A stretch of 64,000 bases of DNA from Eutreptiella sp. 'Long Island Sound 2002' (lineage: Eukaryota; Protista; Euglenida): NCBI GenBank assembly GCA_964036045.1, contig OZ038378.1:176204001-176268000 (forward strand). The letters run 5' to 3'. Positions within the stretch are counted from its first letter, which is position 1. Every line of letters starts with the position of its first letter. The notes under the pieces are model-generated. The model was not told where the DNA came from. It did no database searches and saw only the letters and a list, made by a program, of their open reading frames with translations. Shown piece by piece: positions 2,291 to 56,365 of the stretch. The position numbers and the translations under genes are program-made.

Positions 2291-2519
2291 GTACTGCATT
2301 GCTCACGTGCCACTGTGCAGCCCAAGACTGTTCTTTTTGGAGGGTGCACGGGCTCATTGTTCCTCAAGAGATTCATAACTAACCCACTGGAGGCCGTCAC
2401 CACAGGGCGGTGCCACAGGCACACATGGACTTCACCCGCAGTGTGCACACGGTCCACAACATAAGGCTTGACCCGAGGCTGGCCCTGAAGTCCTTGTGGA
2501 GAAGCCCTTCCAGCAGGGC

Positions 2520-2850
2520 TGCGCTGCCTCACCGCAGGGGGCAATGGGCAGTAGGACTCCGGCAGTACACTGCCGCGCTGCAAGGGGGCCGGGAACGGGG
2601 CAGTAGCTGACGCACTGCACGGGGGTCGTGGGCAGTGGAAATTTGGCAGTACACTGCCACAACAGTGGGCAGTGGGCAGTGGCAGTGTGGCTGCTGAATG
2701 CACTGCCCGATTCCACAGCCCACTGACCCTGCAGTGTGGCGGTGTACCAAGGCATCCCACTACCCACTGGCCCCGGCACTGTGGCAGTGTACTGAAGGAT
2801 TTCCATTGTCCATTGCCCCCTTTCCCCTGCACAGTGCCTTTTGGCAACAG
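2520..2850. repeat. Foldback element made of CAGTACACTGCC-containing subunits
   Basis: The left arm CAGTACACTGCCACA is the reverse complement of the right arm TGTGGCAGTGTACTG; the outer arms GGGGCAATGG / CCATTGCCCC also pair. Confidence 0.8.
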
Positions 2851-4173
2851 CGCCTTCGGCACACACACAGACATTGTCCCCAGGACTCTGTCCACCGGCT
2901 CCATGTAAGGGAACCCTCCAAAGCACCCCAACCAAGCGACCCATGTGGGATTTCCACTAAAATATGGTGTTTCCCGTGCAACCCCCCCTCCCCCACACAC
3001 ACGTGATGATGTTTGTGCACCTAAAAGTGTGCATACCGGTGTGTAAGTTTGTGTGGAAAACTGCAAACCCTGGCGCCGCATGTATGTGGTATGTTCGTTG
3101 GAGTCGGATCACATGCGTTGCCTATGTACCTATGTTCCTTCATGGTCAGACGCGGTCAATTAGTGCGTTTTACCAAGTCCACAAAACAAGCAATGGGCCA
3201 TGTTGCCAATGTTGCCAATGTTGGGCAGTCACACCGTTGGTTGGAGTTGGATCTGAAGTTTCTACCAAGTTTGCGTTTGCTTGTGTGGCGTGGTTTGTGT
3301 ATGTCTGCTTGTTTCTCATATGTTGATTTCCTTAAGGGTTTTGGGGGGTTTCTGCCTTTGCCTACTCTGCCTCCATTGTTGGTGGATCATTGTTTCTCAA
3401 TTTTGCTGCCCAGTATAGTGCCATCATCTGCCCCAGCATCCGGCGTTTTGCTTGGACCTACGCCACTTTTCCGAGGCAGAGTTCCATGAGCAGCTCGTTG
3501 GAATGGAACCCCACATCTCGTGCCGGGGACCCCCCCTTGTCCAAGCACGAGCTTGTCCAAGCACGAAGACCCCGTGTGACCGTTGTTTTGATGGTTTTTC
3601 CTGACCATGGTTTTTACGGTCAGAAATTCAACGCTTGGTGATTGTGTGCTGCTTGTAGAGGGAAAGAGGGGCTGTTTGTGATGGTTCCTCTTGCTCACAA
3701 CATCATTCTGATTGGTACTGCAACCCAATGCTATCTGTTTTGCTGTGGTTTCCAGCCATGAATAAAGTCTCCATCACCATCAGAGGCAGGTTCGGAGGCC
3801 TCACCAACACGAGGGCGGTCATCAACAGCAGCCCGTGCGATTTGGGCCCAGGCCATATTTTCGAGGGCAAGCTTTACTTCACCAAAGATATTATTGATGA
3901 CAGTTTTGTCCCCAAGAATAGGAAGCCTAAACCTGTTCCACAACCTGCAGCCAAGCCTGCTCCGAAGCCTGCCCCAAAGGGGAAGCATGTGCAGGTTTTC
4001 TATGTATAGTGTCTTTTTGTGTTGCGCATCGTGCGCAAGCACGGGCTAGCACGGGCTAGCACGAAGACCCCGTGTGACCGTTGTTTTTCTGACCTTGGCC
4101 GTGCTTGGACGGGGGGGGGGGGGCATTGCCATCGCATGCCATCACATGAACTTTTCGCCCCATTACACTTCAG

Positions 4174-5026
4174 GGCCCAAGCCTTCCGACTGGTCCGCGT
4201 GATCAACTACTTCCCGTGGAACACGCGCAACAGGACCTTGGTCAAAACCTGGTTTCACTGCTTCCGAGACTATTTCTGGCTGGAGCTGTTGCACTGGCTG
4301 TTCATGTGGTGCATGGCCGTCATCGCGGCGTACATCTGTACCAGCCTCCCGTTGCCTCACCAGTTTCGATTGGGGTTCGACACTTTGTTCCAATCCCTCA
4401 CCACAGCGTACGTCTACAGCACAGGCTTCGCGTGGCAATACTACCTGGCGGAGTTGTACAAGGTTTCTGACTGGTTCAAGATTGTCTACTCCCTGGCATT
4501 CCTGGTGCTGCTCTTCATGTTCGGGCTCTTCATGATGCCTGCCCTATTTGTCACTGTGCAACTTCACCGGATATGGACCATGATGCAGCGAGCAATCACG
4601 ACTAACAGCATCCACTCCGAGTACCTCACAAACGACCCTCGGTTACCGGCCTTGACGCAACTGATTGATCAGAGCCAATTCACACTCAGTGGGAGTGACG
4701 GCGCCCAGAACTCCGACGACGCTGACTGGGAGAGTGCGGCCTCGGGCGAGGGCATGCAAGGGCTGACGTTTGCCCCGGACGTCGATCCGATTGGCAGGCG
4801 AACCACCGGCGCCGCGGATGATCTGCAGCCCTACAGCGGGGCCTCGCCGCGCGTCGCGGACTTTGTGCTCGGCACGGCATTTCGAGCGGCCACGCACCTC
4901 AACATCGTGGCCCACTGCGTGTTCGTGGCGCTGGTGAACGACAAGGCCAGGGACGGTACGAAGGCCGTCTACACGGTCGGCCTCGTCGTCTGTCTGCTCC
5001 TCTGCGCGATTGAGACGGCATTGAAG
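4174..5026 (+). CDS. Channel exon: repeat II S4-S6, II-III linker, repeat III S1-S2
   Basis: TTCAG|G acceptor (phase 2). AQAFRLVRV S4-like segment, FDTLFQSL...TGFAW pore helix, hydrophobic S6, acidic linker, ends IETALK|GTCCGA. Confidence 0.85.
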
Positions 5027-6258
5027 GTCCGAGCCGCCCGCATCGTGCTCAGGGTCATGCATGCAAAGGGTCCCCGGTGCACAGGGGAGTCCACAAGGAA
5101 CGGACAGCTCCCACCTTCGAATATTCGCAACGGCCCAGCGCACTCACCCCATTCTTCGGTGCAGGGGTACCGCCCTGCGACCACGTATCTTGTGGCTTGC
5201 TCATGTGCCAAGCCGCCCCCCCCTCCCCTTCAGATCCCCCAAAGTTCTCGGACCTTTGGCCAATTTCAGAATGGAATCTGGGAATCTGGGCGCCGAAGCG
5301 TGGCATCGTTTTGTGCACGTGACAAGGGGGGCACCCAACCGTGTGCGAGGACTTTGGGGGGTCTGGAGGGGCGTCCGGCCAAGGGGCCAGCCGGAGCCAA
5401 AAAAACTTTCACCCCTTCACACATGCCTCAAAATGATCGGTGCGTCGTGCTGATCATTGAGAGTTGTGTATGTTGGGGTAAAAATGTTTTTGAAAAAACG
5501 TGTTGCCCCCTGGGGGGGCCAGCAGCCGAAACGGATTGGGTTGAGGTGAAGGTGGGAATCAAATTGTTTCTCATGTTTTTTAAACATATTTGAATTCTCC
5601 GGGTTAGGACTCTGAGCCTGTTGAGGACACGCATATGGGGTGAAAAAATCTTCTGCCCCTTGCTGTACAACAAGGAATAGTGCGCTGGCCGAAGGCACCG
5701 ACACTCAATTGCACAAGAGCAGCACGCAATCGAGCAGCGTCTAATTTGCACGGGCCACATATAAATTGTACGCCGTGTGCGAGAAGAAAAATCGGGGACA
5801 ACAGAAACAGAACCCAAAAGCATATTCTGGCCGAACATCCAGTAAATTGATGCCCCGCCAAGAGTCGGATCCGATTTCCTTCTGGCGCCATCCGATTGAA
5901 CTGTTCAGGTACAAGTTCATGAAGAGCGCCTTTGCTTTCATACCGCCTCCGCACTCATGCCACCTCCGCATGCCACCTCCACTGGTACTGGGTCCATACG
6001 GTACCCGGCTCAGCAATGGTACGGCCTCTGTACCGAAACCACTGCTCTCCGCTGACACTGCCACTGCACTACTGACAGCCCCGCTACACCCAAGGATACC
6101 GTCTGAGTCCTCTGTGGGCTGTAAGTGTAAATTTTAAACGAGCGTCTCGCGGGTCCGTTATGGGGCCTTGACCGGGCCGTCAACTACTGAGATCTCTTGT
6201 GGCGAGGGTGCCGGTTGCTTCCATGATCATTACCGACTCACCCTTTTCCATTGCTCAG

Positions 6259-30979: not shown

Positions 30980-33900
30980 ACAGACAGCAGAGGGTAATAT
31001 GTGTGCCCCCCCGGAGCCCTACACCGTGGTAAGAGCACGCCGCAAAATACGAATTGTGGGCATGTGGGCAGAACACACAAGAAAAACACGCGGCGCAGTC
31101 GCTTGTGTCGGCCTTGTGCACCGCGCACTGCCGGTGGTCATCCTGGAATGGGGTTCCCTGCCCGTAGCAGACGAAGCAACCTTGGGGGTGAGTCTTGATG
31201 AACTCCCCAAAGGACAGGGAAGGGTCGCCCATGCGGCGGGGCTCCTTCCTTTCAGCCTTCCTCTAGCCCTGAGTGAGGGGCTTCTAGGACTTCCGGTTGT
31301 CCCCCGATTCAAGTTGTTGGCCACAAAGGCGCAGACCGCTGCCTCCCGGGGCTCGTCATCGTCCTTGGCCCCTTTGGCCCTGGGGGGGCGGCCGGGCCCG
31401 GTCCTTGTATGTGACACCCCCGAGCCCCCCCCCCCCCCCCCCCCCAAGTTTTGAAAGATAGCGGCGTGGGGGCCATGGCACCAACGGCGCCAAATTTTTT
31501 GTCCCATGCTTAGTTGAGAGGGGTACTATGCCTTTAGTCCTTAAGACCCTTAAGACTTTCTTCCTGGCAAAGACAAGATATCGCTATTATCGCATACATA
31601 CCTCTGTACCCCCATGCACCCGGACACCCCCTTGAGGTATGCATTTGATAGTAGTGGGTTGCGCGCACCCCCCCCCCGGCCAAGCTGCCAATACCCCCCC
31701 CCCCACCCTCCCGCCGACCCCCCCCCCCCCCCCGCCCCAACTGCGCCACCCAAGTTTTGACAGATAATTGGGGGGTAGTCGCATCAGGACCAGTTGTAGT
31801 CGCCCCCCCGGGCCTCCGGCGCTCTCGACCTCGTTGCTGTCGGGAGGGTTCTTTGGGCTCGGGTCGTCGGGGTCGTCCCACACGCCGTGGACTCCACGGT
31901 CGTTTTGCCCTTGCCACCCTCGGTTGTGGTGATGGTTCTTGTACTCCTTAAGCACTTCCTCACTGACCCATTCCAGCATGTTGCCGCACCTCATCCTCGC
32001 CGGGATGGCCTGCAGACAAATGGTCTGGCCACCGACCTCATGCTCATCCAACCTCGAGACCGTGGCCTTCTCTCGCTCGCTCTGGACGGCGATGAGGAGG
32101 GATTTCCGGAGAGAGTGGGCCCTGGCGTCCCGAGCGACATTTGCCCTGGTCCAACTCACCACCCTCTTGTGAAGGTGCTTGCGGAGCATCATCTTCACGG
32201 TGTGCGTGGACTTCGCCCGCTTGGCTTCCTCCTTGGTGAGCCGCTTGGACCAAGCCTCCGGTAGGAGACCGAGCAGACGAGACTGCTCGTCGCCCTCGTT
32301 CCAGTCCTCCACGTTTTGGCGCTTCAGGACGTACTGCCCTCTGAAGTCGCGCCAGTCGCGCAGCCGGATGTCCTTGCCATCATGATGGAGCTTGATGGCC
32401 CTCCATCACTTGGCTGTGACCTGCGGGGCATCCACCCAGTCCTGCTCGTTGAGCCACCTTTTGGCGTCGCGGAGGGACTTGATCTTGCCCTCTTTCTGCG
32501 TTGTGAAATACAGCTCTTGGAGCGCCTCAGGGAGCCGGAAGCGGGACGGCTTGTAGATGTACTTCTTGGCAGCCACGGGGTCCATCTCCTCGGTGACCGT
32601 GAGTCCCCATTCATCCACCTTCTCAAGGAAGCGGTTGAGGTTGAGGGGGTTTCCATCGTATATGGGGGGGCAGATGTCCTTCAAGTCTTCCCACACGGCG
32701 GCGGCAGTGGCCCTGGAGACCAGGAACGCCGGTTGTGAGGACGTTTTGCATTCCCATCGACGTCCCGCACCCACGCCCACGGCACGCACGTCCATGTTCT
32801 CACCGCCGTCGCGTCTCCGTCAGGGCTCCTCCACACTGGCGCCTCCTAGGTGGTTCCGGCGGACGGCATCCATGTACTCGTCGGCTTCGCGATCTCGGCT
32901 GGGGTCCTGGGTACCCATCTCGACGCCCTGGGCGGGCTGATGCCATAGTCCTCCATGGCCCCCGCGGCATCCTCCTCCAGGTCCCAATCCATCTCCCCTT
33001 CCGGGATCTCGTCCTCCAACACCCCGTATGGCCCATACGACCGTTCCGGCTCAGGGGCCCGCAAGGGCAGTGGGGCGCCAAGCAGCCCCTGACGAGCCCC
33101 ACTCCAAGGTCGGGGGATCTTCCCGGGCCATCCTCGGATGCGGCGCTTCTGCCGCTCCACATCCTGGGTCATCCTCTCGATCGTCCCCTCGTGGGTGTTC
33201 ACCACGCCGGATACGGATCGGACCTCCGCTCGCAGGATGCCCACTTCCCGCTGGGCCCGACCCGCCACCCACGCTTGGGCTTGGGTCTCGCGCCGCAGGA
33301 TGAGGGTGTCCTGCTCCAGCTTGCGGATCCTGTAGCGGAGGTGTAGGATCCAGCGCCACACGTCCTCCGGTATGGTGGGCCCGGGTCGTCCGCCTGGAGG
33401 TCCTCCACTCAGTGGCCCTCCACGCGGCAGTCTTCCGCGCAGTGGTCCTCCACGCGAGCTCCCCCCGTACTCTCAGTCGTCTCGGGGGTTGGTCTCCGCT
33501 TCGGCACGCTCCGGGGTTCCTTCTCGGCTGGCGTAGGGAGGGGGCGGACCGTCGTCATCCGAGCCGGGTGGGGTTCCATTTCCTCCTCCGCTGCCACCTG
33601 CCGCTACACCCCGGCTGTAGCTCGTGGGTGTCTCGCGGCATCGGTTCTTGGGCCCGTCCCCGTCGCTGCACGTCAAGAACGGGTCGGAGTCACGATGGGG
33701 TCCATCACGGGCGCTTCCGGGCCCTTTCCGGGGTCTTTCCCTTCCGTGCGCATTGGTCGCAAGGTGCCTCCTCCTCACTGCTCCGAGAGTCCACCGCATC
33801 CAAGTCGATCTTCATGCCCTTGGGCTGGCCCTCGCAGAGCCTTCGCAGGGGCTCAACTCTGGAGCCTCCCACGGGGGTGGCGGCGTCCAACTTCTTCTTT

Positions 33901-38200: not shown

Positions 38201-40384
38201 AGGGTTCCCAGGAGTGTGAGGGTCCTGGGCACCGCTTCATGCATGATCATGGGGATAAAGAAAAATGCCCCTTTTCCTTAAAATGCGACAGTGGTGGCCA
38301 CCACAACACACGGGGGGAGAAAGAAAAAGTGTATTTCAAGTCCTACCGGAGCAGCTTTAGTTGTATTAAAGACACTCAGGGACACATCACATTTTTATCT
38401 TAGTGTTTGTCCCTCCACAAAATGTGGTAAATGCATTTTGACCTATAAAACCAATCAAATGTTTTGGAAAGGTGATGAGACCCCTGCCCCCCGCTTTTTG
38501 TCGGCTAACTTAAGATCGTCATGTGATATCTAGAATTGCTGGGGCACTGCTGTGGTTGAGAGCCCATACATTTTTATCTATTTTTTCGTTAATGTCCCTA
38601 CCTATCCTAGTGGTATGCACCCTAGGGAACTAAGGCACCTCTTTTTGAGAAGTCCTGGGCTCAAACCCCATTAAGCCTAGCTGAGTAGGATGAGCCCTTG
38701 TGGCATGGCAATTAGCTCAGTGCCACAAGCCATGCCACCTCAGCAAATATGGAGCTAATCTAAGAAGTGCACATCTCAGTGAGACACTGAGTTGAGAGGG
38801 TGTGACCCTAAGGCAGTTTTCCCTACTTTTTCAATTAGTTTTTATCTACCCTTTTAAAGACATCTTAATCTAGCTGATTTCTGCTGTACATAGCCTGTTT
38901 GTTCCTGCCTTTCTCTGTACTGTCCTTCAAGTCTATGATTCGATCCATCTTTTATACCTTCGGATTACATGCCGTTCTATTGCCTATCTGGTTTCATTGA
39001 TTTTATTGAAACCCCGGACAGTTTTGGGAAAATACAAGCAGGAGCACTCAACAAGCGCTTGGAAGTCTACAAAGAAACTTTTGCAGTACCAGTGCTAAAT
39101 CTTACCGTAACATCAGATGTTGGTGCAAGATTGAGCGCAGTGAAGACTGGGTGAGATTACTCTCTGTCATCACTCTGATGATAAACTGTCAAGAGAGCCC
39201 GTCTACGGGCTACCCATGTTCATGGGACACGTTGCCTATTTTTTACATGCCCCCTACCCAAAGGACTTCTATTCCACTCTGGAGGAGTGGTTCAAGGAAG
39301 AAGGAAGAAGGGGACAAGATGAACAAGGCCAAGGCCATGCACCAAACTGCTCCCCCCAAGTGTTTCCTTGTTTTTGTCGACTTTTCCTTTTTTCCTTTTT
39401 TTTTTCCCCTTTCCGTATCTTGCTCTTGCATCTTTTTCTCTGTTCTTGTAGGAGCCAACACAGGGATCGTCGCCGATACAGTGTGGCCAAGCGGGTAATC
39501 GGCTGTGGTGCACGAGCAGTCAATCTTTTTCTCGATGGATTGCAAATAGCCAGTGTTTGTCTTTCTTGTTCCATTGACACTCTCCCCAGAAACAAAAAGA
39601 AACCCTCGAAGAAAAAAGGCACCTCCAGGGAGCTTCTTTCAAAGGCCTGTAAAGATGAAATCTGAACCTTGCGGCTGTAGCCGCAAGCGATTGAAAGTCC
39701 ACGACTAGAGGCCCACTAGACAGATGTGTTCGGCCAGCAATCCGACCTCACAGTGCATGCTGCGAAATGGGCGAAAAATACAGCTTGTCACAGCCACAGG
39801 CCCTCACACACAGGTTCTCCACCGTTTGGCCTCTTTTGCCAAATACGGCATGACATCATTGAATGTTTGTCTTGCAGATGTCTTGAAATCACCTTGAAGA
39901 GAGATTGTTAGATCAAGTGCAGGCACGGGTGCCATATACTGCCCTTTTGGGGGTCATTTGCATAGCATACCCCAGTGGGTGATATGGGATGTCCAACCCC
40001 TTGTGAAATCATCATTGTCGGAGACAAAATTATCCCCTAATAGATTTTTCGATTTGACCCCGTACCTGGGTGGCACTTTTGGGGGGGTGGGGGTTGGGGG
40101 AGGGGATCAAGACTTTTTTTTTGCGTATTGTGGCCGCTGTGCATTGATTTCGACCCCAGTCCTGAACAACTCTTTCCTTATGCATTGGCCCTCTAAATAA
40201 ATGGCGGGGGTCTCGGGTCTGAACTCCGGGTGCCCGAATTTCAATGCGCCTGCAGAGACATGGTGCGCAGTGCAAGTCGGTCATTTCGGGTCCTGGCCCT
40301 CGACCATGCCCCAACCGTCACAGACATGCCCAACATCCCAATTCGGTAGCCCAGTCTCGCGACTGGTGCATCAACGCTGCCGCA

Positions 40385-40398
40385 TTTGTTCGCTGTAG
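40385..40398 (+). promoter_or_regulatory. Candidate 3' splice / SL trans-splice acceptor 4 nt upstream of the ynfA ATG
   Basis: TTTGTTCGCTGTAG|GGCGATG. The same arrangement occurs at CWC22 (TTCCGCTTTGTACAG|CTTTGGGCTTATG, AG at 45385-45386). Confidence 0.5.
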
Positions 40399-40402
40399 GG
40401 CG

Positions 40403-40858
40403 ATGGCGACATGGACGCTGCTGACCGTCCTACGCTCCGCGGCCCTCTTCCTCGTAGCCGGCATCGCTGAGATCGGCGGGGGCTGGATGGTGTGGCAGCA
40501 CGTGCGCGAGCGGCGGCCCTGGTGGCTGGTGCTGCTCGGTGCTGCCGCCCTCGTGGGCTACGGCTTTGTCCTCACGCTGCAGCCGCCGGCGGCCGGTGGG
40601 GCATTCGGGCGTCTGGACGCGGCGTACGGCGGGTGCTTTATCGCCATGAGCTTCGTCTGGGGCCACGTCGTCGACGGCATGCGGCTCGATTGGGGGGATG
40701 CCATTGGCGCGGGGCTGTGCCTTGCGGGCGTTGTGGTCATCATGGCCTGGCCCCGCGGCGATCCCAATGGGCCCGACCTGGCGGACGCCGCATCCGAAAT
40801 GCACGTGGCGCTGTCTCCCAGTGACGGAGGCGGGACTGCGATGGCAATGGCTCGGTGA
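40403..40858 (+). CDS. ynfA: YnfA/UPF0060 family small multidrug-resistance-like membrane protein, intronless
   Basis: Family motifs read directly: [36 protein letters not shown]...VDG.R.D..D.IGA.LCL.GV.VI..WPR. Four TM helices. Confidence 0.92.
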
Positions 40859-43800
40859 GCCGGGCCGGGGTGCGCACCCGCACTGCCCCGTGCTGCCCTC
40901 CGCATTCACGCACCCCACGCACGGCATAGAGCGCGCCTCAGCAGCAGCCCCATTCATGCGGGTTGTGCAGTGGTCGCAGTCGGAGTGCTCCTGTAGCTGT
41001 GCGGTCCTTGGGGCGTTTAGGTTCGCCGGTATGGGCCTCTATTCATCAGGACAAGCGGCAGCGTCGTTTCAGCGGCAGGATGGGCCATTCGGAGATTGAC
41101 AGTTGCGGGATCAATTCCTGGTAAATAGTGCAATGGCAAGAGACATGGCCCTGCTAGGTTCCAGTGGGGCTGACGTCCAGGGTGAAGGACCCATAAGCCC
41201 AAGACGCACGTGTCGAGGACGATTCCAGCCCACACTACCACTCCGAACAGGAAAGACGTGCGCCGGTGGTTCCGTAATCTACTGCAATGCTCAAACCGAA
41301 GCCAGCCACCGGGAGCTTCTTGCGGGCACAATGACAGTACCCTCCTGGTGATGCATGATGCACGAGCATATTGAGACCTGGCTGAAAGTTGCCTCGAGAG
41401 TGTGCACTCAGAATTGAGAGTGCCTCACACACGGTGCGCGCAAAGGGGCACCAAGATATCTGAAATTTTAAGATTGGGCACGTGGTAAATTCCTTCTCGA
41501 TACCACTGTGCTGCAACCAGGGTGGTGGCACAGTGGGGTACGCGGGCGCTACAGCAGAAGGTGGAATAAACATGGCAAAGATGCACAATGGTGACCATCT
41601 ACAGTAGTGATGCAAAAAGGTGTGCACGATCTCTGCCCTGCTGGGACGGCACGCGTGGATATATAGTTCAAGAACAGCCACAAGAGCTGTATGCATCATC
41701 CATGAGTGCTTCCATGGAAGTTGTAACCCGACCTTCTTGGGGGCAATTCTAACTTTGCTCTAGGGTCTTGGCCTGCCCAACAGGAGGTTGATCAGTAGGC
41801 AACAAGTACTTCTGTCCAACTGCGTCATGCTTTGGTCATGGAGCTTGACCTCACAGCCCATGGTGCAAAGTTGCCTTGCGGATCATCTCCCTGGGTCATG
41901 GCTCCCCTTTCATTCCATCATAGAGCTACTCATCGAGTGGGCGGCAAGCGCCACGGAGACAAAACGTCATGATCTTGTCCACAAAGCAGCCTGCTCCACT
42001 GGGCATTCTCAGTACAACTGGGAACGGCCAGAGTGCTCATATTGGATGGCGACACACTCAGGGAAGGACGAAAGGCCCACAACAGTGGCAGGCACACGTT
42101 CCCCAGTGGTACCTCTCTGATGAAAGACATTGCTGCCCGGCTTCAAAAAGTCAGCATTCATTGCCATGTGTCCTATGAAATCTAAAGGAGGAAACACATA
42201 GGAATACTGATATTGTGCAACATACAATGCCCCCTGCAGCCCACAAAGAAACCACACGAAATTGACAGCAGGGGCCATGCATCAGCACACTTGAGGTCTT
42301 CGCGTTGCTCTTCTTGGGAGAGCTAGGTGAATGGTTGAGCCATGAATTCTGCTGAAGGGAGGACAACGTAGCATGCTAGTTGGGGGTCAGGTGCGCGGGG
42401 CGACGTGAGCTTGCGGGGTCACGTTGTTGTGGCCGCGCATGTATGCTTCGGCTTCGGTGTCGGGCTGCAGCTCTGACGTGCACGTAGTCCGCGTGGTCTC
42501 AGCGCCCTTCTCCGTGATTGTTCTTTACTAGTGCTGTGCCGTTGTTTGTGTGGCGCGAGTTACGTTGTTGATGCATGAGGGCGTGGCGTGATGCATGAGG
42601 GTGCGGCGTGCGGCAGCACCTCCTTGGTGGTGGTGGAGTTGGTCTCGTCCATATGCAAAGTTGCGCCTCCGTCTTGGCAGGCAACCCTGTGAGGGCAAGA
42701 CATGTGGCAGAGCACACGGCCATATGCAGGGGCAGGGTGGAGGCTTTTTGGTCCATCGGCATGTCACCAAAGGTTTTCTGTGCTGGTACAGGGGGGAGTG
42801 CAGCATCACCACAGGCTTTTGGCCATGCACCCATCGCCGGGCCGTGGTTGTTGTGGGAGCTGGGAGCAATGGGAACTTGCGTACCAGCTCCCCTATCATG
42901 GCAGGTGAGTGGGTGCGGGGCCCTTGGGGTTGAAGCCCGTCAAGCCGGCGGGGTGCCTGTGGGGGTGAGGGTTCCGGCATGAAGGGGGCTGCTGGCCTGG
43001 TGAACGCCACTGCAATTGATTCATGGCCAGCGTGCCGGTTAGGCCAGGGGGTGGGGGGGTGGGGGCACTCAACTAGCCACACTGAGTCTGTTTTTACTCT
43101 GGGCCATGTTAGTTCATGGCCAAGGGTGCAGGGGTGTGGGTCCCGACTCTCACCCCCGGAGGGCTCTTCAAACGCGCTGTGGTGTTGGGTTGTTTGGGTT
43201 GACCACAATGGGGCGAGGGTGAGCAGCTCTCCTTGGCAAAACCCAGCCTCATCACAATGGCTTCTGCAGTGATGGGCGCAGGCACAGGCTTGTGCAGGGT
43301 TGGAAGCAGGCAATGGGTTGTGCAAGGGTGTGAGCAAGCAATGGCTTGTGCAGGGGTGTGAGCAAGCATCTCACGTCTCCGATTGCGTGTGCAGATTCAC
43401 CCATGGCCCCTTTTGTATCACAAAAAATTGCGGCCTCCCTGCCAGGGGCTGTTTGCAGCTACAACCAGCAATTCCCTAAGGATGAGGTCCTTGGACTGTA
43501 GTGGACCGTTGTTGCATGCTGCCCCCTTAGGCCACCGCGTCCCTGCCTGCAATAAGGGTGTAGTTTATTGGTAAATGATGCGTCTATTAAAGTGCGCGGT
43601 GTGAGCTGCGGCGTGCCGTGCGACTGAGGCACTCTCAATGTGCACAGAAATTGGTGATGCCTGAGGATGCGAAAATCTCATGTTTCCCCATAAGCACCTG
43701 CTCACTCTTTGTAGACGAGTGAAGGATTGCTTATTCCAATGTCTGCAGCGCGACTTGACATCCATGAGTCATAATGGTGAGGAATTACAAATGGGTGAAA

Positions 43801-45396
43801 ATGCTGTCAGCCAAGGCTCTAGAAACATAAACAAACCGGGCTGTCCCCAGATATGCATAAAGGCACGATTTCCCCCAACTGAAAAGAGCGGACAAGGGCT
43901 TGAGTGGCTCTGCAATGACCCTCAGCAATGAGGTTCGCCATGTAAGCTGGGAGTTGCCTGTGAGAGAGGTTTTAGGGGTTGCATTCCAGCGGAATATTGC
44001 TGTTGGTGGGAACAGACGTAGGAGCTTTAGGCCGGGTTTGGAGAGCAATTTCAGTGGACGTTGTGCTGTGTCTTTGAGGATAGAATCACAGAATCCTCAG
44101 CAAGGTGATACGAAGTGCATTTGACATTGTTCTTTTTCAATGGACCCACAATTGTGTTTTGTGTGGATAAGTTTGGTTGAAAATTAAGAAAAAGCCAGTT
44201 CTTGAAATAGTCAATACTCCGCATGACAGATATCTCTTAACAGTGGGGCCATTTTGGCAGATTTCTCTTTTTCGGTGCAATGCACACAGTGGCATCGTGC
44301 ATCAAACATGGTCCGAAATTGCAGCATGCACACAGCGTCCATTCGATCGTCTGATGCCTGACCTGAAGGGACACACCGTGCGCTGTGCACAAATTTGGCC
44401 ATTTGTCCAGTGCCTTGCCTGTGTGACCTTGTGAGTATAAAAGTGCAACAAGAGGAGGAAAACATGCAAGAGAAGGTAGGATGGAGTTCGATGAAAGGGA
44501 TCTAGAGATTGAAATGAAGATATCAACAGCATTCTGCTGAAACACACTTCGTACGCCACAATCAGTCGCATTGAAGTGCTGACTGACACTACTTGGACTG
44601 TTTTCCTGGATATTTTTTTGGCGGATGCTTCCAATTCCTATCATCAATCTCCGCACTGTGTTCGCTTGGGAGGAAAGGGTGTTCATTGACGAAATGATGC
44701 ATAAGAGGAACGCAAAGCGGCACCATCAACACGAGAATTGCACTGGCACAGTGATACTCCACCCCCTTGCCCCGTCCCCACTATCCCCCCGCCCTTGCGA
44801 TACCCCCTGGGGGCTGGGGGAACTGTCACCTGCAACATTTTCAGGACTGGAATGCTGGCAGCCAAGCCTGCAGCAAGTGAGCCCATTCCAGTGGCCCTTG
44901 TTGAGCAGGTTTAGCTCTTCATATGACTGCCAGAAAAGGTGGCATGCGGAGCATGGCCACATGTTCTTTCACATGGTCATTTTGTGCATGTTTTGTTGTG
45001 GCCCCGGTTGCCTTGGAATTCCCGGGGGTTGGCAGGCGAGGGAACCCTCCCCTCTGGCCAGTTTGGCCATGTTCCCTCGGGGGTGTGGGGGAACCGTCGC
45101 GTGCCGGCGGGGGAATCGGAAGGGGGGGCGGAGGCACAGTGACGGTACCGTCCCAGGAGGTTGGGTGGGGGGGGCACCGGCGCACGGGGGGGGGGGGGGG
45201 GTTGACAAAGTTGGGGCCGGGGGGGTTGCTCTCCCTTAGCATGTCCCCACACTTTTCTGGTGCTTCCCTGCACTTCCCGAGCGGTTCTCTACATTTCTGT
45301 GGGGGTTCCTGGTGTCGCTTTTTGGTGGGGACTTCACCGCTCGTGACGTTGGCGGCCTCTGTTCATGTGTGTTCCGCTTTGTACAGCTTTGGGCTT

Positions 45397-47453: not shown

Positions 47454-47560
47454 GACAAACCGGAGGATCCGCGGGCCAAGGCAGACATGGAGGATTATTT
47501 GAAGGAGAAGCGCAAAGACATGGACACGCGCTCCGGGGGGGTCTACATCCCGCCGTTCAG
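47454..47560 (+). CDS. CWC22: CWC22 exon with the conserved N-terminal motif
   Basis: TRSGGVYIPPFR matches the CWC22 TRTGGAYIPP motif; ends at a GC donor AG|GCATGT. Confidence 0.9.
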
Positions 47561-47696
47561 GCATGTTCGGGTGCGGGGGCCATGGTATCCGTGATGCAGG
47601 GCCTTCGATGGACGACCCGGATGTGCGGTCACGAATGCCCCGCAGCGTGGGGTACGGCCACATGAACGGCAACAGCAGCCGCGGCAGTGACAAGTA

Positions 47697-47871
47697 ACCC
47701 CCCATGTCCAGCGAATGCCGTGTCCAACGAATACTGCCGTTCGGATCGTTAAGTGCCGGGTTTTGGGAACCGAATTAATTGGGTACCGAACGGCGTGTCC
47801 AACGAACACTCCTGTTCGGACCGTATTTTTGGAGGATTTTATTGTTCGCTGGACACGGGGGGAGGGGGGGT
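47697..47871. mobile_element. 175-bp MITE with TA target duplication inside the GC-AG intron of CWC22
   Basis: TA|ACCCCCCATGTCCAGCGAA ... TTCGCTGGACACGGGGGGAGGGGGGGT|TA; internal GTGTCCAACGAA direct repeats. Confidence 0.8.
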
Positions 47872-48137
47872 TACATCTTGAACAGCAAACACACCACAGA
47901 GCAGCACAACAATGATGACGAACATGACAGCACTGACCATGACAAGACGAACAACAGCAACGCAAGCAGCAACAATGCAACAATGACATCATCATCAATA
48001 GCAACAACAACACCAACAACGATAACAGCAGCAGCAGCAAAATTGGATGTACCCGGCACGGGAGGGGGCGGTGGAGGGTCCAAAACGGCCGTGCGTGTGG
48101 ATGCATGTGAATGCCGCCTATGTGTGTCGTGTTGCAG

Positions 48138-48246
48138 GCTGCGGCAGATGCAAGAAAATGTGTTGGGGGAGGACCAGTCGTCGCCGGAGGCACAGCGGAT
48201 GTTATGGGAGGCGTTGAAGAAGAGTATCAACGGCCTCATCAACAAG
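48138..48246 (+). CDS. CWC22: CWC22 exon, start of MIF4G domain
   Basis: QRMLWEALKKSINGLINK is near-invariant in CWC22; AG/GT boundaries. Confidence 0.95.
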
Positions 48247-48773
48247 GTGTTTGCGGCCCATGTGTGGGCAGGGACGCGCAGCCTGTACGTCCTGTGCGCC
48301 TGTGTGTGCGTGTCTGCAGCCCCGCCGTGTCCGCACCTGTTTGCATAGCGTGTGTGCGTGCAGGTGTGGCAATTGCACTCTGCGCAGAGGCATCAGTACG
48401 CGTACCTATACGTAAAGCTTACCGTGTGGATGGATTTTTTGCAATGTACGCCTGCGACCGACCCCGGCACTTTTGCTGTGCGCTGGCAACTTTCTGTTGC
48501 CCTACGTCCCCAGGACCGTCACGCGCGCGTGTGTGGACGGACAGGGCGGCTTCGGGGGTCCGGTGCATTGGGATTCCCCCCACCAACACCACCCACCTAC
48601 CGACAACACACCGACAGCGCAATACGCTTGACGCTTGGGATTTACAAGTCAAACTGCGCTTGTCACTCCCGCATATGCCCGGCGTCTTAGTCTACCAGCT
48701 ACAGGGGGTTGCGGCACAGGGATTACTTAGAAATGAAGGCGCCGCGCTGCCCTTGTGCCGCGCCATTCCGCAG

Positions 48774-48872
48774 GTGAACACCCTCAACATCAAGAACATC
48801 ATTCCGGAGATCTTCGGGGAGAACATCATCCGTGGCAAAGGGCTGCTGTGCCGGTCCGTCATGAAGGCCCAG
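48774..48872 (+). CDS. CWC22: CWC22 exon, MIF4G
   Basis: VNTLNIKNIIPEIFGENIIRGKGLLCRSVMKAQ; 99 nt, phase 0/0. Confidence 0.95.
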
Positions 48873-49849
48873 GTACGGGACACCCGCCCACCCTCAGCGA
48901 CTGCCGACGCGGATAATCCGGGGCCCTTCTCGAAACCAAACATTCAGTCGGTCACCTGCGCCCCCCCCTTTCAGATCTGCCCTTCTGGTCGCGCGGTTTC
49001 GTGCGGTTGGGGACGAAGTGTTCAAAGTGAGCTCTGCGGCCCGCGCCCAGTGCGCTGTTTCGCTCGGGTTATGTGTTGCCCCTGCGGTGTGGTCTGCAAC
49101 GCCGTGTGCCGTGGAATTGCCTTAGTTCGGTGTGTCAGAAACGGCAGCAGAGCCCCAGCGCACGCGCATGGGGACCCCCCACAGGTGCCTGCCCTGTGCC
49201 GACTGGAGACCGTCAGTCAGTTGTCCGACGTTCGTCTCCAAGCGCTATTCACAAATCTTATAGTGTGGCACGGTATCATGTGCGACTCGAAATGATGGCC
49301 TGTTCGCACTGATGGCAACGAGTTGTGGGTCCATGCGAAAAAGCATCCATCTGCAGGCCCAGTCCTGACTTGGTTTGGCAACATTTCTCATTTCCGAAAA
49401 GCTGGGGGCTGGTTGGGGGGTTACCGGTCGTGTGCTTGGACCGGGCCCCCAGAGGAGGGGCGGGGGGGTCCAAGTTGGATGGTAAAACATCTGGGACTCC
49501 CCTGCCCTTTGCTACTTTCGCTGCCGCCGCTGCTGCTGTCGCTATGTCTACTGCTGTCAGCTTTTCTGATTTGCTTGCTGCTGACTGCGCGGTGGGTCCA
49601 GGTTTTGCAGCAGATGTGTTGCGGGAGAGGTGGTGCTGTGGTGTGTTGATGCCTCAGAAAGCGCCCTCGCCCCCCCGCCAAATGTTTCTGAAGGGGGGGA
49701 CTGGTTGGGTGGTTGGGTGGTGTGTCAACACCTTGATTCCCCCGCTCTAATGAACACAGTTGCTGCTGTCCTTTGTGACAGATTCCACGCGGTCTCAGGG
49801 CGTTGATGCCGCCCCTTCCCAGCGATTCCACCCCCGCGCCATGTCTCAG

Positions 49850-50062
49850 GCCGCATCCCCTGCCTTCACCCACGTGTTTGCCGCGATGGTGGCGGTGATC
49901 AACACCAAAATCCCAGAGATCGGGGACCTGCTCTTGACGCGGATCATCATCAATTGGCGCCGGGCTTTCAAGCGTAATGACAAACAGATGTGCTCGACCC
50001 TCGCAAAGTTTTTGGCGCACTTGACCAATCAGAAGGTGGTGGATGACAATCTCACGTTGGAG
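49850..50062 (+). CDS. CWC22: CWC22 exon, MIF4G
   Basis: AASPAFTHVFAAMVAVINTKIPEIGDLLL...FKRNDKQMC...KFLAHLTNQ; 213 nt, phase 0/0. Confidence 0.95.
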
Positions 50063-50909
50063 GTGCGCGCGCGCTATGCCACTCCAGTGCTTTCTTTCGG
50101 AGCCTAAACGATTTTCTTTGGCCTCGACCAAAGTCAGTGTCCCACCGGTCAGTGGTTGGCGCTTGGCGTTGGGTTACTAAGAGCGAGCGGTGTATCCGCC
50201 AGTGGTTGGTGGTGAACCAGCGACGGTTACCAATTTACCGCAGGCAGTTGCCATGCCAAGTGACAAAGGTGGTGATTTCACGTTTGTCACGTGCCACGGA
50301 CCGCAGACGTTAGCGATGGAGCCCTGTGCCTGAGGTTTGGCCCCTGGTGGTGCATCCAGTAAAAGGAAAATATCTGAGGGTCATGAATATCAAGGGCAAC
50401 AATAACCAATGCCTCAATTGTCAAGGTGCTCGCCGCCAGACGATGACACACCTCTGTGTCCGGCATCGTAGTTTTCTGCTGAACTGAAGGTGCGCACTGG
50501 CTTGCCGACAACCGGCGGTCGCAGACACACCGTGTTGCGTTTGCTGTTGCATCAGATTTATCCAGGTCTCAATGATAAAGGAAAATGCCTTTTGATAAAT
50601 CCGATGTTTTGTACGTTTTTAGTTCAGTGTATTGAATCGACGGCAGTTGGCAAACGGCTGACGGCGATGGTTGATAAGGGGCATGACAGCGGCAGTTGGG
50701 TGACGAACGGTCCGGTCACGTGTCACCGACGCAAGTTGCTGGTCGAGCCACGTTTCCTCACGGTTCTGGCGTAAGGGAGTGCAGGTGGTTTATTGCCCCG
50801 CGGTATAATTCAAGCGTCACTGCCTCAGTGCTCTGATCTTGCCGTTGTCGTCCAAAACGCTCTCCCTCCCCCGCCGGCGCCGCGTTCATGATCGTGCATT
50901 GTCGCGCAG

Positions 50910-50975
50910 ATGCTGACGCTGCTCCTGGACAAGCCGACCGACGACAGTGTGGAAGTCGCTGTGACTATGGTGAAG
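50910..50975 (+). CDS. CWC22: CWC22 exon, MIF4G
   Basis: MLTLLLDKPTDDSVEVAVTMVK (cf. LLLE.PTDDSVEVA). Confidence 0.95.
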
Positions 50976-51419
50976 GTGTGCCCTCGCCCTGGGGCTGGCG
51001 CCTCCAACATTCGGAATAACATACACCCCGTCGCACGAAAGAGGGGAGCAGGGAGGGGGCAAGGGGCTGACGGGGGGTTTCAAAAGTGGGTGCCAGAGCG
51101 GTTACTGGTGGTTGGAAAAGCGGTTGGCACAAGGTGTCGTGACGGCGTTTGTGGCCCGTTGGGGGCAGACAGCAGCGGTTGGGACGGGGGCGGACTGTCA
51201 CACCGAAAAGGGGGTGAGGAATCCCTACCCCCCCCTCAAGCACATCCCTGGCCTTCGGGGGCGGGAGGGCGCTCTGGGAGTGTTCAGCGTTCAGGACAGC
51301 CGTTGTCCCCATCCAAAACGCAAGGCACAACGGCCGCCGAGAGTACAGGGCATCAGACATTCCTACCGGAGAAGGACTGGGCGCCCGTGACAAAACCATG
51401 CAAAAGAGACAACCAGAGG

Positions 51420-51660
51420 GTGGCATACGCGACAGGATTCGAGCCGACAGACGTCGTCAAACCCCGATCCTGGGGTCGGCAGGAATGTTCGGAGGCCGCG
51501 GGTTTACTGCGGGCGCCGGTCGAGGGGAATTGTCGAATGTTGGGATTCGAACCTGGGACCAAGTGTGCAGGCGTCAGGGGCTCTAGCCTCCCGACCGACC
51601 GCAGTCTCGGCGGCCGATAGGCCACCGATGGCACTCCACAGTAAAAGCGACGGGTGGCAG
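51420..51660 (-). repeat. tRNA-like/SINE units in a CWC22 intron
   Basis: - strand CCCAGGTTCGAATCCC B-box with an upstream GGCTAGAGC A-box-like motif; a second degenerate GGCTCGAATCC nearby. A related + strand unit lies at about 55930-55995 (CCCGGTTCGAACCCTGGG). Confidence 0.55.
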
Positions 51661-52246
51661 GAATGGCTCACGCATATCCGCCGGCTGTTGCAGGTGCACC
51701 GACGGTTTCCCGGGGTGGGGGCCTGACCGGGTCCGAGGAGATTTGTTGTTTTGGTCGTACGGAGCGCCGGTGACTGCCTGGGCGCCGGAGTACTGCTGCA
51801 GGCGGGTTACCCCATGCCCTGACCAACAGGGGCAGCATTGCTCTTCGGTTGGCCGGTGGTTCATCATCGTGCGGTGGGACGAGGGGGGGGGGGGGGGCGG
51901 TTCGAACGGCCATGTACCACAGGACGTGCGGGGGGTGGGGGCGGGTCGGGAACGCACGCGGCGCGGGCAACAGGGTGCTGCACTCACTGCGGTGTGCCCG
52001 GGACAGGGGCAAGCGTATCCGCCGCAGCCAGTGGAATCAGGACCAGTAATTTACCAGTACACCTCCCCTTTGACCCCCCGACCCTCCTCTTTAAGGGGTG
52101 ATTGATTTGCGAAATTGTCGAAGATGCAACCGTTTGCTGGACCGGTGACAAGTTGGGTGTAGATTGAAGCAAAATGTGGATGGCCAATGCCTGTCCTCTG
52201 TCATTTGAAGTATTTAGCCCGGCCACCCCGTGCGTGTTCACTGCAG

Positions 52247-52327
52247 GAAGTGGGGGCGACGCTTAATGAGGTCAGCAGCCTTGGCCTGCACGCCATTTTT
52301 GAGCGTTTCCGTGCCATTCTTCATGAG
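52247..52327 (+). CDS. CWC22: CWC22 exon, MIF4G
   Basis: EVGATLNEVSSLGLHAIFERFRAILHE; 81 nt, phase 0/0. Confidence 0.92.
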
Positions 52328-54104
52328 GTGTGCTGCATCTGTACCCAGCCCCACTCACTCCAGCAGCCTATCTCTCTTCACCCCACGCCCACCCAATGCA
52401 GTATAGCACAAGTGAATCCAGTACGAACCAATCCGGCAGGCGCACCCACTCTCGCCCTATTCAGCCCGTACACCGCACCCAAGGCCACCCAGAACCGGCC
52501 CGCGCCACTCAGCTCAGCTCCACCCCACACCACCCCACCCTCATATCACAACCCAATGCAGTACTGTCCACTGCGAAGTTCGGGAGTAGCAGCTCTCAAA
52601 CGATGATTTCACGGCTCAAGGGACAAATGTTGCTCCTTCCCCAACCCAATCCAAGATGGATGCGCGTTCTAAGTGGTGGCCGTGGCGCATTCTGTGGTTT
52701 CATGTCAAGTAATGTATATCGCGGAAGGCTCGCGATTCTCATGGTCTTGTAGGATTAGGGCACTCATTCGGTGTCCAGCCAAAGACGTCAGATTTTGATG
52801 TCGAGACGCCTTGTCACGTCGGAGACGGAAGTTCGACAAAATCTCCCCTCCGTTTCACATGTCGTGTTTTCCATCCTGTTTTATATCTGAGTTGAATTGG
52901 TACAAACTCTAAAACCAAATCCTACACATGTCCGATGTTTTGTTTGTTGCTCTTTGCTTTGTGATGCTTCCCATGTTCTTAAGAATGTGTCTATTTCAAG
53001 GCCGTCACAAAGCCGGTGCGGAGTGGATTGCAATGTGGTGCACCTCTCAACCTTTAAATTACCTTACTAGCTAGATTCTTCTTTGACCAAGAGGGTAACC
53101 ACAGACAGCCAATTTTCGCGCCAGAAACGACACACACGGCAAGTTTTTTAGGGAATGCCTGCGCAATCAGGTCGAGCAAGTGCATATGTGCGCTTTTTCA
53201 ATGATAAATTATGCATGCCCCACGTCGCGACAGTTTTGCGGCATCGCCGCACATTTCTCACTGTTTGACAAGATATTGCAAGTGTTGGAGAGTGTTTAAA
53301 TCGCGTCAGGCGCGAAAAAGCTTGCTTGCTGTCTTGGCCCAAGGAAGGAAGGATTGCGAGTCCCAGCTCAAAATAGTAGGCTCAACTTCGCACCTGAAAG
53401 CGGAGTACCTCAGCCAAGCCAATCCACCCCATTCGAATTCACCGCAATAGGATCCAACCCATACACCCCCCTCCCGCTCCAACCCCCACTATTTCACACC
53501 CATTTGAGGATATTTTGTTGACTGCATTTTGGGTGCTGAAGTTGCACTGTATTGCGCGATTTTCGAGTGCTGCTGGTCTGCCTCACTCCCCGGTCTCGCC
53601 CCTCACTCCACAGCCTCTCACCATCTCTGGCGTGTCACCTTGCCCCCGCCGGCCGTGGGGCCTGCAGCCCAGGGGGCTTCCGGGCCTAGCACGCAGGTAT
53701 TGCAGCAGCCACTCCATTCCACTCCACTCCATCTCTACGGTTTCCTGCCAATAGTAACACAAATGTTCCTGAATATTCCCAAGTGAGAGCTACATCTGTT
53801 ATGCAGAATAATTACAACCATTTCGGAATTTCAGTCGGTGCTTGTACGTACAATCTTCTGTGTTTTCTGCTTCCTCGGTGCTGCACCGGAAGTTTGTCGC
53901 CGTTTTGCATAGAGCGATGTGATTTTCCATGTGAGCAACCTCAGGAAGCCCAGCACAGGCCATGGCCTCTTCTCTGAGGGGTTTTTATCCTAGCAACATC
54001 CATGACTTTCATGCTCCGTGGTTACTAGTTTCATATTCATCTGCGCTGAATCCCAGCTCAGATGATGATGATAAGTTGAAGGCTAAAAAAGAGAAGGTCC
54101 TGCC

Positions 54105-54368
54105 TTGTTGATTTCAGAATGGCAAAGATACACACAGTTGGAGAGACATAAGGTGGACTACTACAAACGCATGGATAGTGATACATTTGGGCTAGCCCAG
54201 GGCTCATTGATATATGATGCAATTGCACGATACATGCAGTTCCCAACAACTGCAGCTCTTGTGGAGCGTTCCTTCAGCTTCGCAGCGCTTCTGATGTCAG
54301 CTTCCGTGCCCACTGCTGGGGCAAGGGTTTGCACTGGTGATGTGGAGGAATGGTTTGCTCAGCGTTAG
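54105..54368 (+). mobile_element. hAT transposase C-terminal dimerisation-domain relic
   Basis: ARYMQFPTTAALVERSFSFA matches the hAT P.TS...ER.FS motif. Confidence 0.7.
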
Positions 54369-54628
54369 ACAGCGATAGTCAGTGTGCGAAAAATATCTGG
54401 GAACTGTGTGGTGCAGGCGTATGCGCCAGAGGGAGTGATGCGCCATGTCCACAACTGCCAAAGGTTTCAAAAATCGTTTCTCTGCCATTCCGAATATTCC
54501 TGGATGATTCCGAAAGGTTCCGAAAATTTCCGGCACAGAAATCTTTCCATGGCGACGAATCTTTGGGAAACCTTACTATCTTCCTCCACGTCCCCTCCAA
54601 TTTACACAGCTCCTTCTCAACTTCGCAG

Positions 54629-54760
54629 GGAGACCTCGACAAACGCACGCAGTACATGATCGAAGACCTGTTTCTTGTGCGGAAGAGCAAATTTGCTGCG
54701 CACCAGCCGATCACTGAAGACTTAGATTTGGTGGAGGAGAGTGAGCAGATCACCCACGAG
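54629..54760 (+). CDS. CWC22: CWC22 exon, end of MIF4G
   Basis: GDLDKRTQYMIEDLFLVRK...LDLVEESEQITHE. Confidence 0.95.
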
Positions 54761-54911
54761 GTTTGTGCAAACCTGCGGATCGCAAAGTGCTGCAGCCCGA
54801 AGCCTGGCCCTCCAAATAGCCCCTCTACGAGACGGGCTGCAGCCACCACCTGAGCCCCAACCCCGTTCTGCCCCTGGGGATGACCTGTTGCCCTTGCATC
54901 CCCCAGACGTC

Positions 54912-54968
54912 TCATCCTCCTCCTCCTCCTCCTCCTCCTCCTCCTCCTCCTCCTCCAACACTACCACC

Positions 54969-55020
<52 letters not shown>
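54912..55020 (+). repeat. Compound (CCT)n and (GTCT)n microsatellite
   Basis: Direct reading. Confidence 0.97.
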
Positions 55021-55023
<3 letters not shown>

Positions 55024-55373
55024 CCACCCCCAATGCATGCACTTGTCAATTACAAACCAAACAGCAACTGATGCTGAACGGACCTCAAATGCCACAAAAT
55101 GTGTCTCCTCACCATCCCCGTGTCCCATGGACATGCAATACTACTTGTCGCAGCCTCAAACAGCTTGCTCACACACCCTGGTCTCCACACACTCATGCGG
55201 CTACACGCGCTGCAGAATGACGTAAATATTGCATGCAATTGGGCACACCACCCACCCATCTCTGATGCACACCATCCACCAGTGATGCACACCACCGACC
55301 GACTGCATACAACCCCTCACCTCTGGGCTATACCTGCCACCCACCTCTGATGCCACCCACCTCGGGTGCTCAG

Positions 55374-55551
55374 ATCTCGCTCCACGATCAAGCCCTGGAT
55401 GCGATGAAGAAGCTCGATTTCTTCCACGTGGACCCGGAATTCCAGAAGAACGAGGACATGTATGAGCAGGTCCGGAAGGAGATCTTGGGGGACGACAGCG
55501 ACGCGGAGGTGGACGAAGAGGACGAGGAGGATGAGGAGGACGAAGCCGAAG
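55374..55551 (+). CDS. CWC22: CWC22 exon, acidic linker
   Basis: LDFFHVDPEFQKNEDMYEQVRKEILGDDSD followed by an acidic run; phase-1 donor. Confidence 0.92.
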
Positions 55552-56216
55552 GTGCTGCTGTGTGCTTTGATGTGCGAGCAGTGAATAACGTTGCCGCGAC
55601 GGGCGTGCTGGGCAATTTTTTAGGCCTCAACGCCTTCGATTGGCGCTATCCCAGGGGCCGCCAAACCCGTCCGCGCCTTGGGAGGGGACCTCGACATGGC
55701 AGGGGCTACGAAGCCACGCCACCTTCCCACAGAATGGATCGACTGGCACACGAGTGGGGGCAATGCTGTTCAGGAGGCGCGGTAGGTGTCACATTGTTTC
55801 GCAGTTTGAACTGCTGGACTTGACGTTTCGCTGTGGGTCTACAGGGGTGGTCTTGGGGTTGCTTTAACTCTTGGAGCGGCAAGTTTGTGGTCTGCTTTGG
55901 GGCTCGTCTCAGGGGCCAGCAGAGGGATTGCGCAGGTCAGCTGTCATGCACCGAGCGCCCGGACTGAAGGGACCCGGTTCGAACCCTGGGGCCACTCGGG
56001 AGCATTTTTGGTTCCCATCCCACGCTCCTCACGAGAATAATTGTGGTTCGATGGACCTGGAGGACGCCCAGGATCTCACCTCACCTCACCTCAAGGGGAG
56101 GGCAGATCTGTTCCCCTCAGGGCCCACAGGGGTTGCGGGGGGACTGAGGGGGTGCAGGTGGTGGTGCCTTGCCATTGGCCCCACCCCAGCCCCGACCCGG
56201 GCCCCTACCGCCACAG

Positions 56217-56365
56217 CCGAGCGACAGCAAGAGATCCACGACATGAGCGAGGCCACGAAGACGCAGCTGCGGCGCACTCTGTACCTGACGATCATGTCCT
56301 CTTTGGACTTCGAGGAATGCGCCCACAAGATCCTGAAAGGCCCCATCCCTTTGGACGGCAAAGAG
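56217..56365 (+). CDS. CWC22: CWC22 exon, start of MA3/MI domain
   Basis: IHDMSE...LRRTLYLTIMSSLDFEECAHKILK; phase-1 acceptor CCACAG|CC matches the previous donor. Confidence 0.9.

Follow-up and report, generated by a model that had tools for sequence, protein, structure and literature searches.

How does a gene of the YnfA/UPF0060 family, which consists of small membrane transporters known mainly from prokaryotes, come to stand in the nuclear DNA of a euglenid? The gene, ynfA, was noticed in a window of 64,000 nucleotides (the whole stretch of DNA that was analysed), and the original prediction took it for a bacterial gene, acquired horizontally and domesticated by its host, which has not yet gained introns. 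We do not think that ynfA is such a snapshot of a bacterial gene under domestication. In our opinion, it is likely to be a working nuclear gene of the host, belonging to an algal lineage of YnfA (named E1 here), that came to the host by descent or from another alga, and not recently from a bacterium. The bacterial ancestry of the YnfA family as a whole is reasonable, and its bacterial origin would lie far back.

The reading frame and its closest relatives

The features of the gene itself, all on the forward strand and with positions counted from the first letter of the window, are the following.

40403..40858, +: YnfA/UPF0060 coding sequence, 151 codons and a stop, without intron
40427..40759, +: core four-helix YnfA domain, residues 9-119 (full-profile Pfam match, AF2 model)
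40469..40471, +: GAG codon of Glu23 in helix 1 (alignment with Glu15 of E. coli YnfA)
40586..40603, +: loop that joins helix 2 to helix 3, P62-A67, with a 3-residue insertion common to the whole algal E1 clade
40616..40618, +: codon of Asp72 in the motif G-R-L-D-A-A-Y-G-G, an Asp peculiar to E1 (E. coli has Tyr60, Actinomycetota have Leu)
40760..40855, +: C-terminal tail following W-P-R-G, 32 aa long (residues 120-151; low-confidence model, GC3 0.67)
40385..40398, +: pyrimidine-rich run ending in AG, a candidate splice acceptor as judged from the letters
40244..40402, +: in-frame upstream extension without a stop (GC3 0.585; homologues begin M-x-x-W-T)

The frame opens with the ATG at 40403, is intact up to the stop at 40856-40858 and codes for a product of 151 aa. 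Residues 9-119 match the Pfam profile PF02694 from end to end (profile positions 1-107 of 107, E 6.9e-33), with a score of 113.5 bits against a cut-off of 24.9, and the NCBIfam equivalog NF002586 is reached with 116.7 bits, its cut-off being 114. The claim of an intact, intronless YnfA/UPF0060 gene is thus borne out. So are several details given along with them. The 12-residue loop segment has, in our alignment, three residues more than actinobacterial YnfA and four more than E. coli YnfA; the tail after W-P-R-G, put at about 30 aa, measures 32; and the AG announced 4 nt ahead of the ATG is present at 40397-40398, behind a run rich in T and C. All ten family-invariant positions are found in the alignment of the window's YnfA, and nearly all of the near-invariant ones are kept. 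Both the conserved Glu and the motif G-R-x-x-A-A-Y-G-G are present, G69-R70 and A73-G77 being invariant. The GC content by codon position is 0.72/0.55/0.82. We take the ATG at 40403 as the likely start because the stretch upstream of it has a GC3 of only 0.585 and because the closest homologues begin with M-x-x-W-T, exactly as this reading frame does; from its letters, the extension at 40244-40402 is probably non-coding.

A word search brought out relatives of the protein that are 63-74% identical to it, and with them it forms E1, a clade of 19-20 sequences. Two members have a name, one protein being from Pelagophyceae sp. CCMP2097 and the other, a fragment, from the haptophyte Prymnesium polylepis; many metagenome sequences are added, and the clade extends to numerous genomes of marine picoplankton. 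Prokaryotic loci are more distant: among the best 80 of 599 confirmed matches, nearly all from Actinomycetota, identity to the window's YnfA is 47-62%, this being a biased sample obtained by a scan with a single peptide pattern. The E1 proteins are recognised by the 3-residue loop insertion, by an Asp in G-R-x-D-A-A-Y-G-G, by W-T near the start (M-x-x-W-T) and by the W-P-R-G that closes the core; in our alignment, the insertion, the Asp and the W-T start occur in all E1 rows and in no other row. Many E1 members also carry C-terminal tails of variable sequence. The loop insertion and the tail, which had been put forward as distinctive of this gene, therefore turn out to be common to E1 members, and together with the start they are characters of the clade and not private ones.

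The tails themselves deserve a remark. Those of many E1 homologues (P0002, P0003, P0005-P0007, P0031, P0037 and others) are rich in Cys and in N-x-S/T sequons, which suggests a lumenal or extracellular C-terminus that would be glycosylated in these proteins. The tail encoded in the window has no sequon.

E1 was recovered both in a quick tree of 165 rows (SH-aLRT 96) and in a careful tree of 104 rows (UFBoot 99, SH-aLRT 95), and no bacterial row falls inside it in either of them. The alignment offers 116-117 usable columns, and columns with indels are left out of the trees automatically; the loop insertion is therefore an independent support for the clade. The two trees disagree about its sister. 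The quick tree has Actinomycetota in this position (SH-aLRT 94), whereas the careful tree has the presequence-bearing algal group described below (100/94), and in it a single branch (98/88) sets 29 eukaryote-type rows apart. In an AU test, the grouping of E1 with Actinomycetota was not rejected (p-AU 0.43), and this grouping may owe something to a shared G+C-rich composition; forcing all 30 eukaryote-type rows together raised the likelihood by 16.8 over the free search and gave the best tree found. Tree searches are unstable on 117 columns, as two constrained searches beat the likelihood of the free one. Given this, and the disagreement between the quick and the careful tree, we claim only the monophyly of E1, whose sister could be either the other algae or Actinomycetota.

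Where, then, did the host obtain its copy? It is quite conceivable, although we would not go so far as to favour it, that an ancestor of the euglenid acquired its E1 gene from an alga of haptophyte or ochrophyte type. The E1 relatives of this euglenid are found in lineages whose complex plastids are of the red type; no named euglenid entry stands among the matches listed (the window's own entries being masked in the collection); and the genomes of euglenids are documented as a mosaic containing algal-derived genes (PMC3101172, PMC6366073), to which ynfA, its host being a euglenid, would add one more case. However, most E1 rows carry no taxon name, and the window's YnfA pairs with the pelagophyte inside E1 at only 60/88. 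A position outside all other E1 rows, as their sister, suits the data at least equally well: forcing the protein outside them raised the likelihood by 7.3 over the free search (p 0.59).

The original prediction had proposed to settle the matter by homology and phylogeny of the protein, and had set its bacterial origin against a broadly distributed, vertically inherited eukaryotic clade. What was found, the algal clade E1, comes near to the latter, but its distribution is patchy rather than broad.

Expression, age and genomic setting

Logan contigs of four runs were placed on positions 38800-44300 of the window, and one of them bears on the expression of ynfA.

40572..40727, +: 156 nt inside the reading frame, matched without a difference by a contig of run X5, a marine metatranscriptome made with oligo-dT

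This contig is a hint of a polyadenylated ynfA transcript; it could also derive from DNA. Another run, X4, is labelled as a different organism and contains identical pieces of the flanks within the same interval, at a depth of 2-6. Were the host a freshwater Euglena, the matches in X4 and X5 would both be surprising; wrong labelling or mixing of samples, or a broader habitat, are possible causes. We consider it improbable that the gene is a silent relic, that is, a copy that looks intact and has lost its expression. It is true that repeats surround it and that GC3 is lower in its tail (0.67), but a relic would sit badly with the retention of all ten family-invariant positions and nearly all near-invariant ones, with the strong structure of GC by codon position and with the identical contig in a poly(A)-selected library.

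A spliced leader may be joined at the AG at 40398, in line with the trans-splicing that had been suggested for this gene. This AG could equally serve an upstream exon that codes for a presequence: N-terminal extensions are present in several E1 homologues, and no stop interrupts the frame across it. The 24-mer used for the euglenid spliced leader has no match in the window within 3 mismatches. The search for repeats around the gene found neither direct nor inverted repeats bracketing it, nor a target-site duplication, so that nothing points to a recent insertion or to retroposition. No A-run follows the stop. A retrocopy of a trans-spliced mRNA was also considered and rejected, as there is no relic of a leader or of poly(A) and no target-site duplication.

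We now come to the proposal of a recent and direct transfer from a bacterium, by which the gene would have become adapted to its host and would be too young to have introns. Its best arguments are that ynfA is free of introns within an intron-rich neighbourhood, that bacteria account for the overwhelming part of the family (of 8000 scored candidates, 7993 reached E<=1e-10), as had been stated at the outset, and that one tree puts E1 beside Actinomycetota, a grouping that the AU test tolerates. Nevertheless, the closest relatives of the protein are eukaryotic and share with it the same derived indel and residue characters, E1 is devoid of bacterial rows in both trees, and neither a target-site duplication nor inverted repeats were found to enclose the gene. 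The argument from introns does not hold either. The pelagophyte orthologue, 571 bp for 133 aa, has two spliceosomal introns, after F-E-I-G and after L-T-R-G; other E1 genes of compact algal genomes, on Tara Oceans and other contigs where they adjoin genes for LHC, ankyrin-repeat and CGLD27 proteins, are intron-free like ynfA, so that a lack of introns gives no date. A recent bacterial transfer is largely refuted by these observations, and we would now call it very unlikely. Of the idea of a domesticated acquisition, there remain the bacterial ancestry of the family, the host-like codons and the nuclear location; what falls is the recent date, the closest relatives being algal. To judge from the sequences, the YnfA gene is one member of an established eukaryotic algal lineage and not a recent bacterial import.

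The nuclear location itself follows from the surroundings of the gene, which are listed here.

40202..42099, strand not assigned: single-copy block carrying ynfA (one unitig with 0 differences in run X1; the unitig of X3 ends at 41974)
39720..40271, strand not assigned: very high-copy host repeat just upstream of ynfA (word depth up to 60,000-105,000)
41928..42295, strand not assigned: high-copy host repeat downstream of ynfA (word depth about 900-3,500)
47478..56338, +: CWC22-like gene, the downstream neighbour, rich in long introns (span of the exon pieces identified to date)
4019-5590, +: ion-channel reading frame, the nearest recognisable upstream gene (Ion_trans match, E 2.4e-07), probably part of a channel gene

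The gene sits on a 1.1-Mb record of an ENA assembly. In X1 and X3, two samples of "organism A", the unitig that carries ynfA has a depth of 29 and 34, respectively, the unique flanks lying at 24-47, and the adjacent unitigs overlap it end to end. Word depth rises to 10^3-10^5 at 39.35-40.27 kb and at 41.93-42.3 kb, with unique DNA at about 30, and these repeats lie 130 bp upstream and 1.1 kb downstream of the reading frame. The claims of host-type repeats around ynfA and of a eukaryotic nuclear location are both upheld, the latter by unitigs free of differences in two samples, a depth at the level of the flanks and host repeats. Within the upstream repeat, at 39904-40087, the summed word depth is 60,000-105,000 where unique DNA has about 30, which suggests that thousands of copies are present in the host genome.

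Downstream, the conserved peptides of CWC22 are interrupted by introns of 0.5-2 kb, and the gene extends from about 47.5 to beyond 56.3 kb. Two of its exons give weak matches to MIF4G (E 0.022) and MA3 (E 0.015), in the correct order. GC3 is 0.81 in nine CWC22 exon pieces and 0.82 in the ynfA frame, in agreement with the host-like GC3 that had been claimed. The statement that ynfA lies between two intron-rich genes is correct on this side only: a second intron-rich neighbour was not found close upstream, where there are 8 kb of repeats and gag-like reading frames.

A few observations on the rest of the window may be added. The first CWC22 intron, placed at 47559-48135 by the conserved peptides and hence with approximate borders, has no GT start and no AG end, and may be a non-conventional intron; several later ones do have GT/AG ends. 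Three consecutive G+C3-rich reading frames on the reverse strand at 31590-33472 (272, 137 and 208 aa) have a gag-like look and no Pfam match, and probably belong to an unclassified retroelement. A Pfam search with 20 long reading frames of the window gave Ion_trans as its single match, and the long frames are mostly G+C-rich noise or frames of unclassified retroelements. Rfam, over the whole window, gave nothing at gathering scores.

That a contaminant gene was wrongly joined to host DNA is hardly credible: the assembly record has a metagenome-style name and the short-read unitigs are broken by the very high-copy repeat 130 bp upstream, but in two separate samples ynfA has the same depth as the unique flanks, the unitig reaches beyond the frame by 200 bp on the upstream side and by 1.2 kb on the downstream side, with its neighbours overlapping end to end, GC3 equals that of the host, repeats stand on both sides with an intron-rich CWC22 gene beyond, and the relatives of the product are eukaryotic.

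A second group of algal YnfA

E1 is not the only YnfA of eukaryotes. A profile search added a second set of eukaryote-type proteins, made up of sequences from green algae, a 222-aa EukProt entry (its identifier resembles that of Cyanophora, and we take it to be glaucophyte-style) and forms with a presequence. The latter (P0042, P0068, P0097 and the locus at 8001-8555 of L091) have N-terminal extensions of 90-100 aa with the look of a signal peptide followed by a transit peptide and with an A-F junction, which is typical of complex red-type plastids. One of them has eukaryotic neighbours on its contig, namely genes for a mitochondrial carrier (Mito_carr), a patatin and a DEAD helicase. The ESM Atlas has a YnfA cluster that is 55% eukaryotic, mostly Chlorophyta.

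In Coccomyxa subellipsoidea and C. viridis (P0028 and P0029), the protein is a tandem fusion: one complete YnfA domain follows another, with some 20 aa of hydrophilic linker between them and 4+4 helices in all. The two halves of this fusion would face the same way, which is at odds with an antiparallel dimer of the EmrE type. Another two-domain YnfA, on an ENA contig (P0030, 235 aa), is of bacterial type and has long branches; its linker includes a hydrophobic stretch, which could form a ninth helix and so invert the second half.

The second algal group resembles the window's YnfA in being eukaryotic and in forming one clan with E1 in the best tree found. It differs in that the insertion is missing, that the Tyr of the motif is kept and that its members have long presequences or a tandem fusion. 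The window's YnfA has no N-terminal presequence, and we think that for this reason it probably acts in a membrane other than those of the plastid, either the plasma membrane or an endomembrane.

Eukaryotic YnfA was not treated in the literature that we searched. The present results provide a first outline of it, with a group defined by presequences or tandem fusion and with E1, which has an indel of its own and an added Asp; the two algal groups and the signature of E1 are a small new description. One may go further and imagine E1 as an offshoot of YnfA specific to eukaryotes, having gained one more acidic residue, a lengthened outer loop and, in many members, a tail with possible glycosylation. 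It would serve algae of separate lineages (haptophytes, pelagophytes, a euglenid) in membranes outside the plastid, and would have spread from alga to alga. We offer this as a tentative idea, and a doubtful one when all its parts are taken together. If it were true, eukaryotes would have in E1 their own class of SMR-type mini-transporters, one that has so far gone undescribed.

Function and comparison with known transporters

The AF2 model of the window's YnfA has a mean pLDDT of 81.5 (83-96 over most of the core, the tail being of low confidence) and consists of four helices, at residues 6-36, 41-58, 62-90 and 97-115. The encoded protein belongs to YnfA/UPF0060, a family of small membrane transporters related to SMR. 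By analogy with the bacterial members, it probably forms a dimer in which the buried Glu23 would couple the export of a small cation, or of a toxic cationic compound, to the exchange of protons. In the alignment, Glu23 takes the place of Glu15 of E. coli YnfA, a residue that has been proposed to bind protons and substrate and is one of nine conserved YnfA residues that have been mutated for testing their role (PMC9295541). Gly26, Tyr75 and Gly76-Gly77 are also kept.

Efflux activity has been reported for bacterial members only. In Shigella, loss of YnfA lowers the efflux of ethidium and acriflavine (PMC9295541), and UPF0060 was tied to thallium(I) resistance by mutant fitness in four strains of three species (bioRxiv 10.1101/072470). 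Because bacterial YnfA is tied in this way to the efflux of thallium(I) and cationic dyes, the algal proteins become candidates for small exporters of toxic cations.

In structure, the best counterparts are EmrE and Gdx of the SMR family. They have four helices, with an essential Glu in helix 1 (PMC9295541), and EmrE and Gdx-Clo are the top PDB matches in Foldseek (TM-score by target 0.63-0.70, prob 0.94-0.99), though with weak E-values of at least 0.27. No such likeness can be detected in sequence, as a search of the PDB with the window's YnfA matched no chain.

The YnfA of E. coli and Shigella flexneri is closer. It shares the PF02694/NF002586 profiles, the four helices, the Glu of helix 1 (E15 corresponding to Glu23), a Gly (Gly18 corresponding to Gly26) and the A-A-Y-G-G motif. 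The E. coli protein is, however, only 36% identical to that of the window, which has four additional loop residues, Asp in place of Tyr60, a tail of 32 aa and a nuclear setting. The proteins of Actinomycetota (Kitasatospora, Nocardia, Arthrobacter) are the best prokaryotic matches listed and have a similar W-L-V-W-Q-x-V-R-E, but they are without the insertion and the tail, have Leu in place of Asp72 and end in P-R instead of W-P-R-G.

The closest counterparts are eukaryotic. The pelagophyte gene (Pelagophyceae sp. CCMP2097 M885DRAFT_525425) differs in its two introns and its shorter tail, and the EukProt entry of Prymnesium polylepis, like several Tara forms, in an N-terminal extension that is absent from the window's YnfA. 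The pelagophyte and Prymnesium proteins nevertheless share with it 70-74% of their residues, the insertion, the Asp, the start and W-P-R-G followed by a tail.
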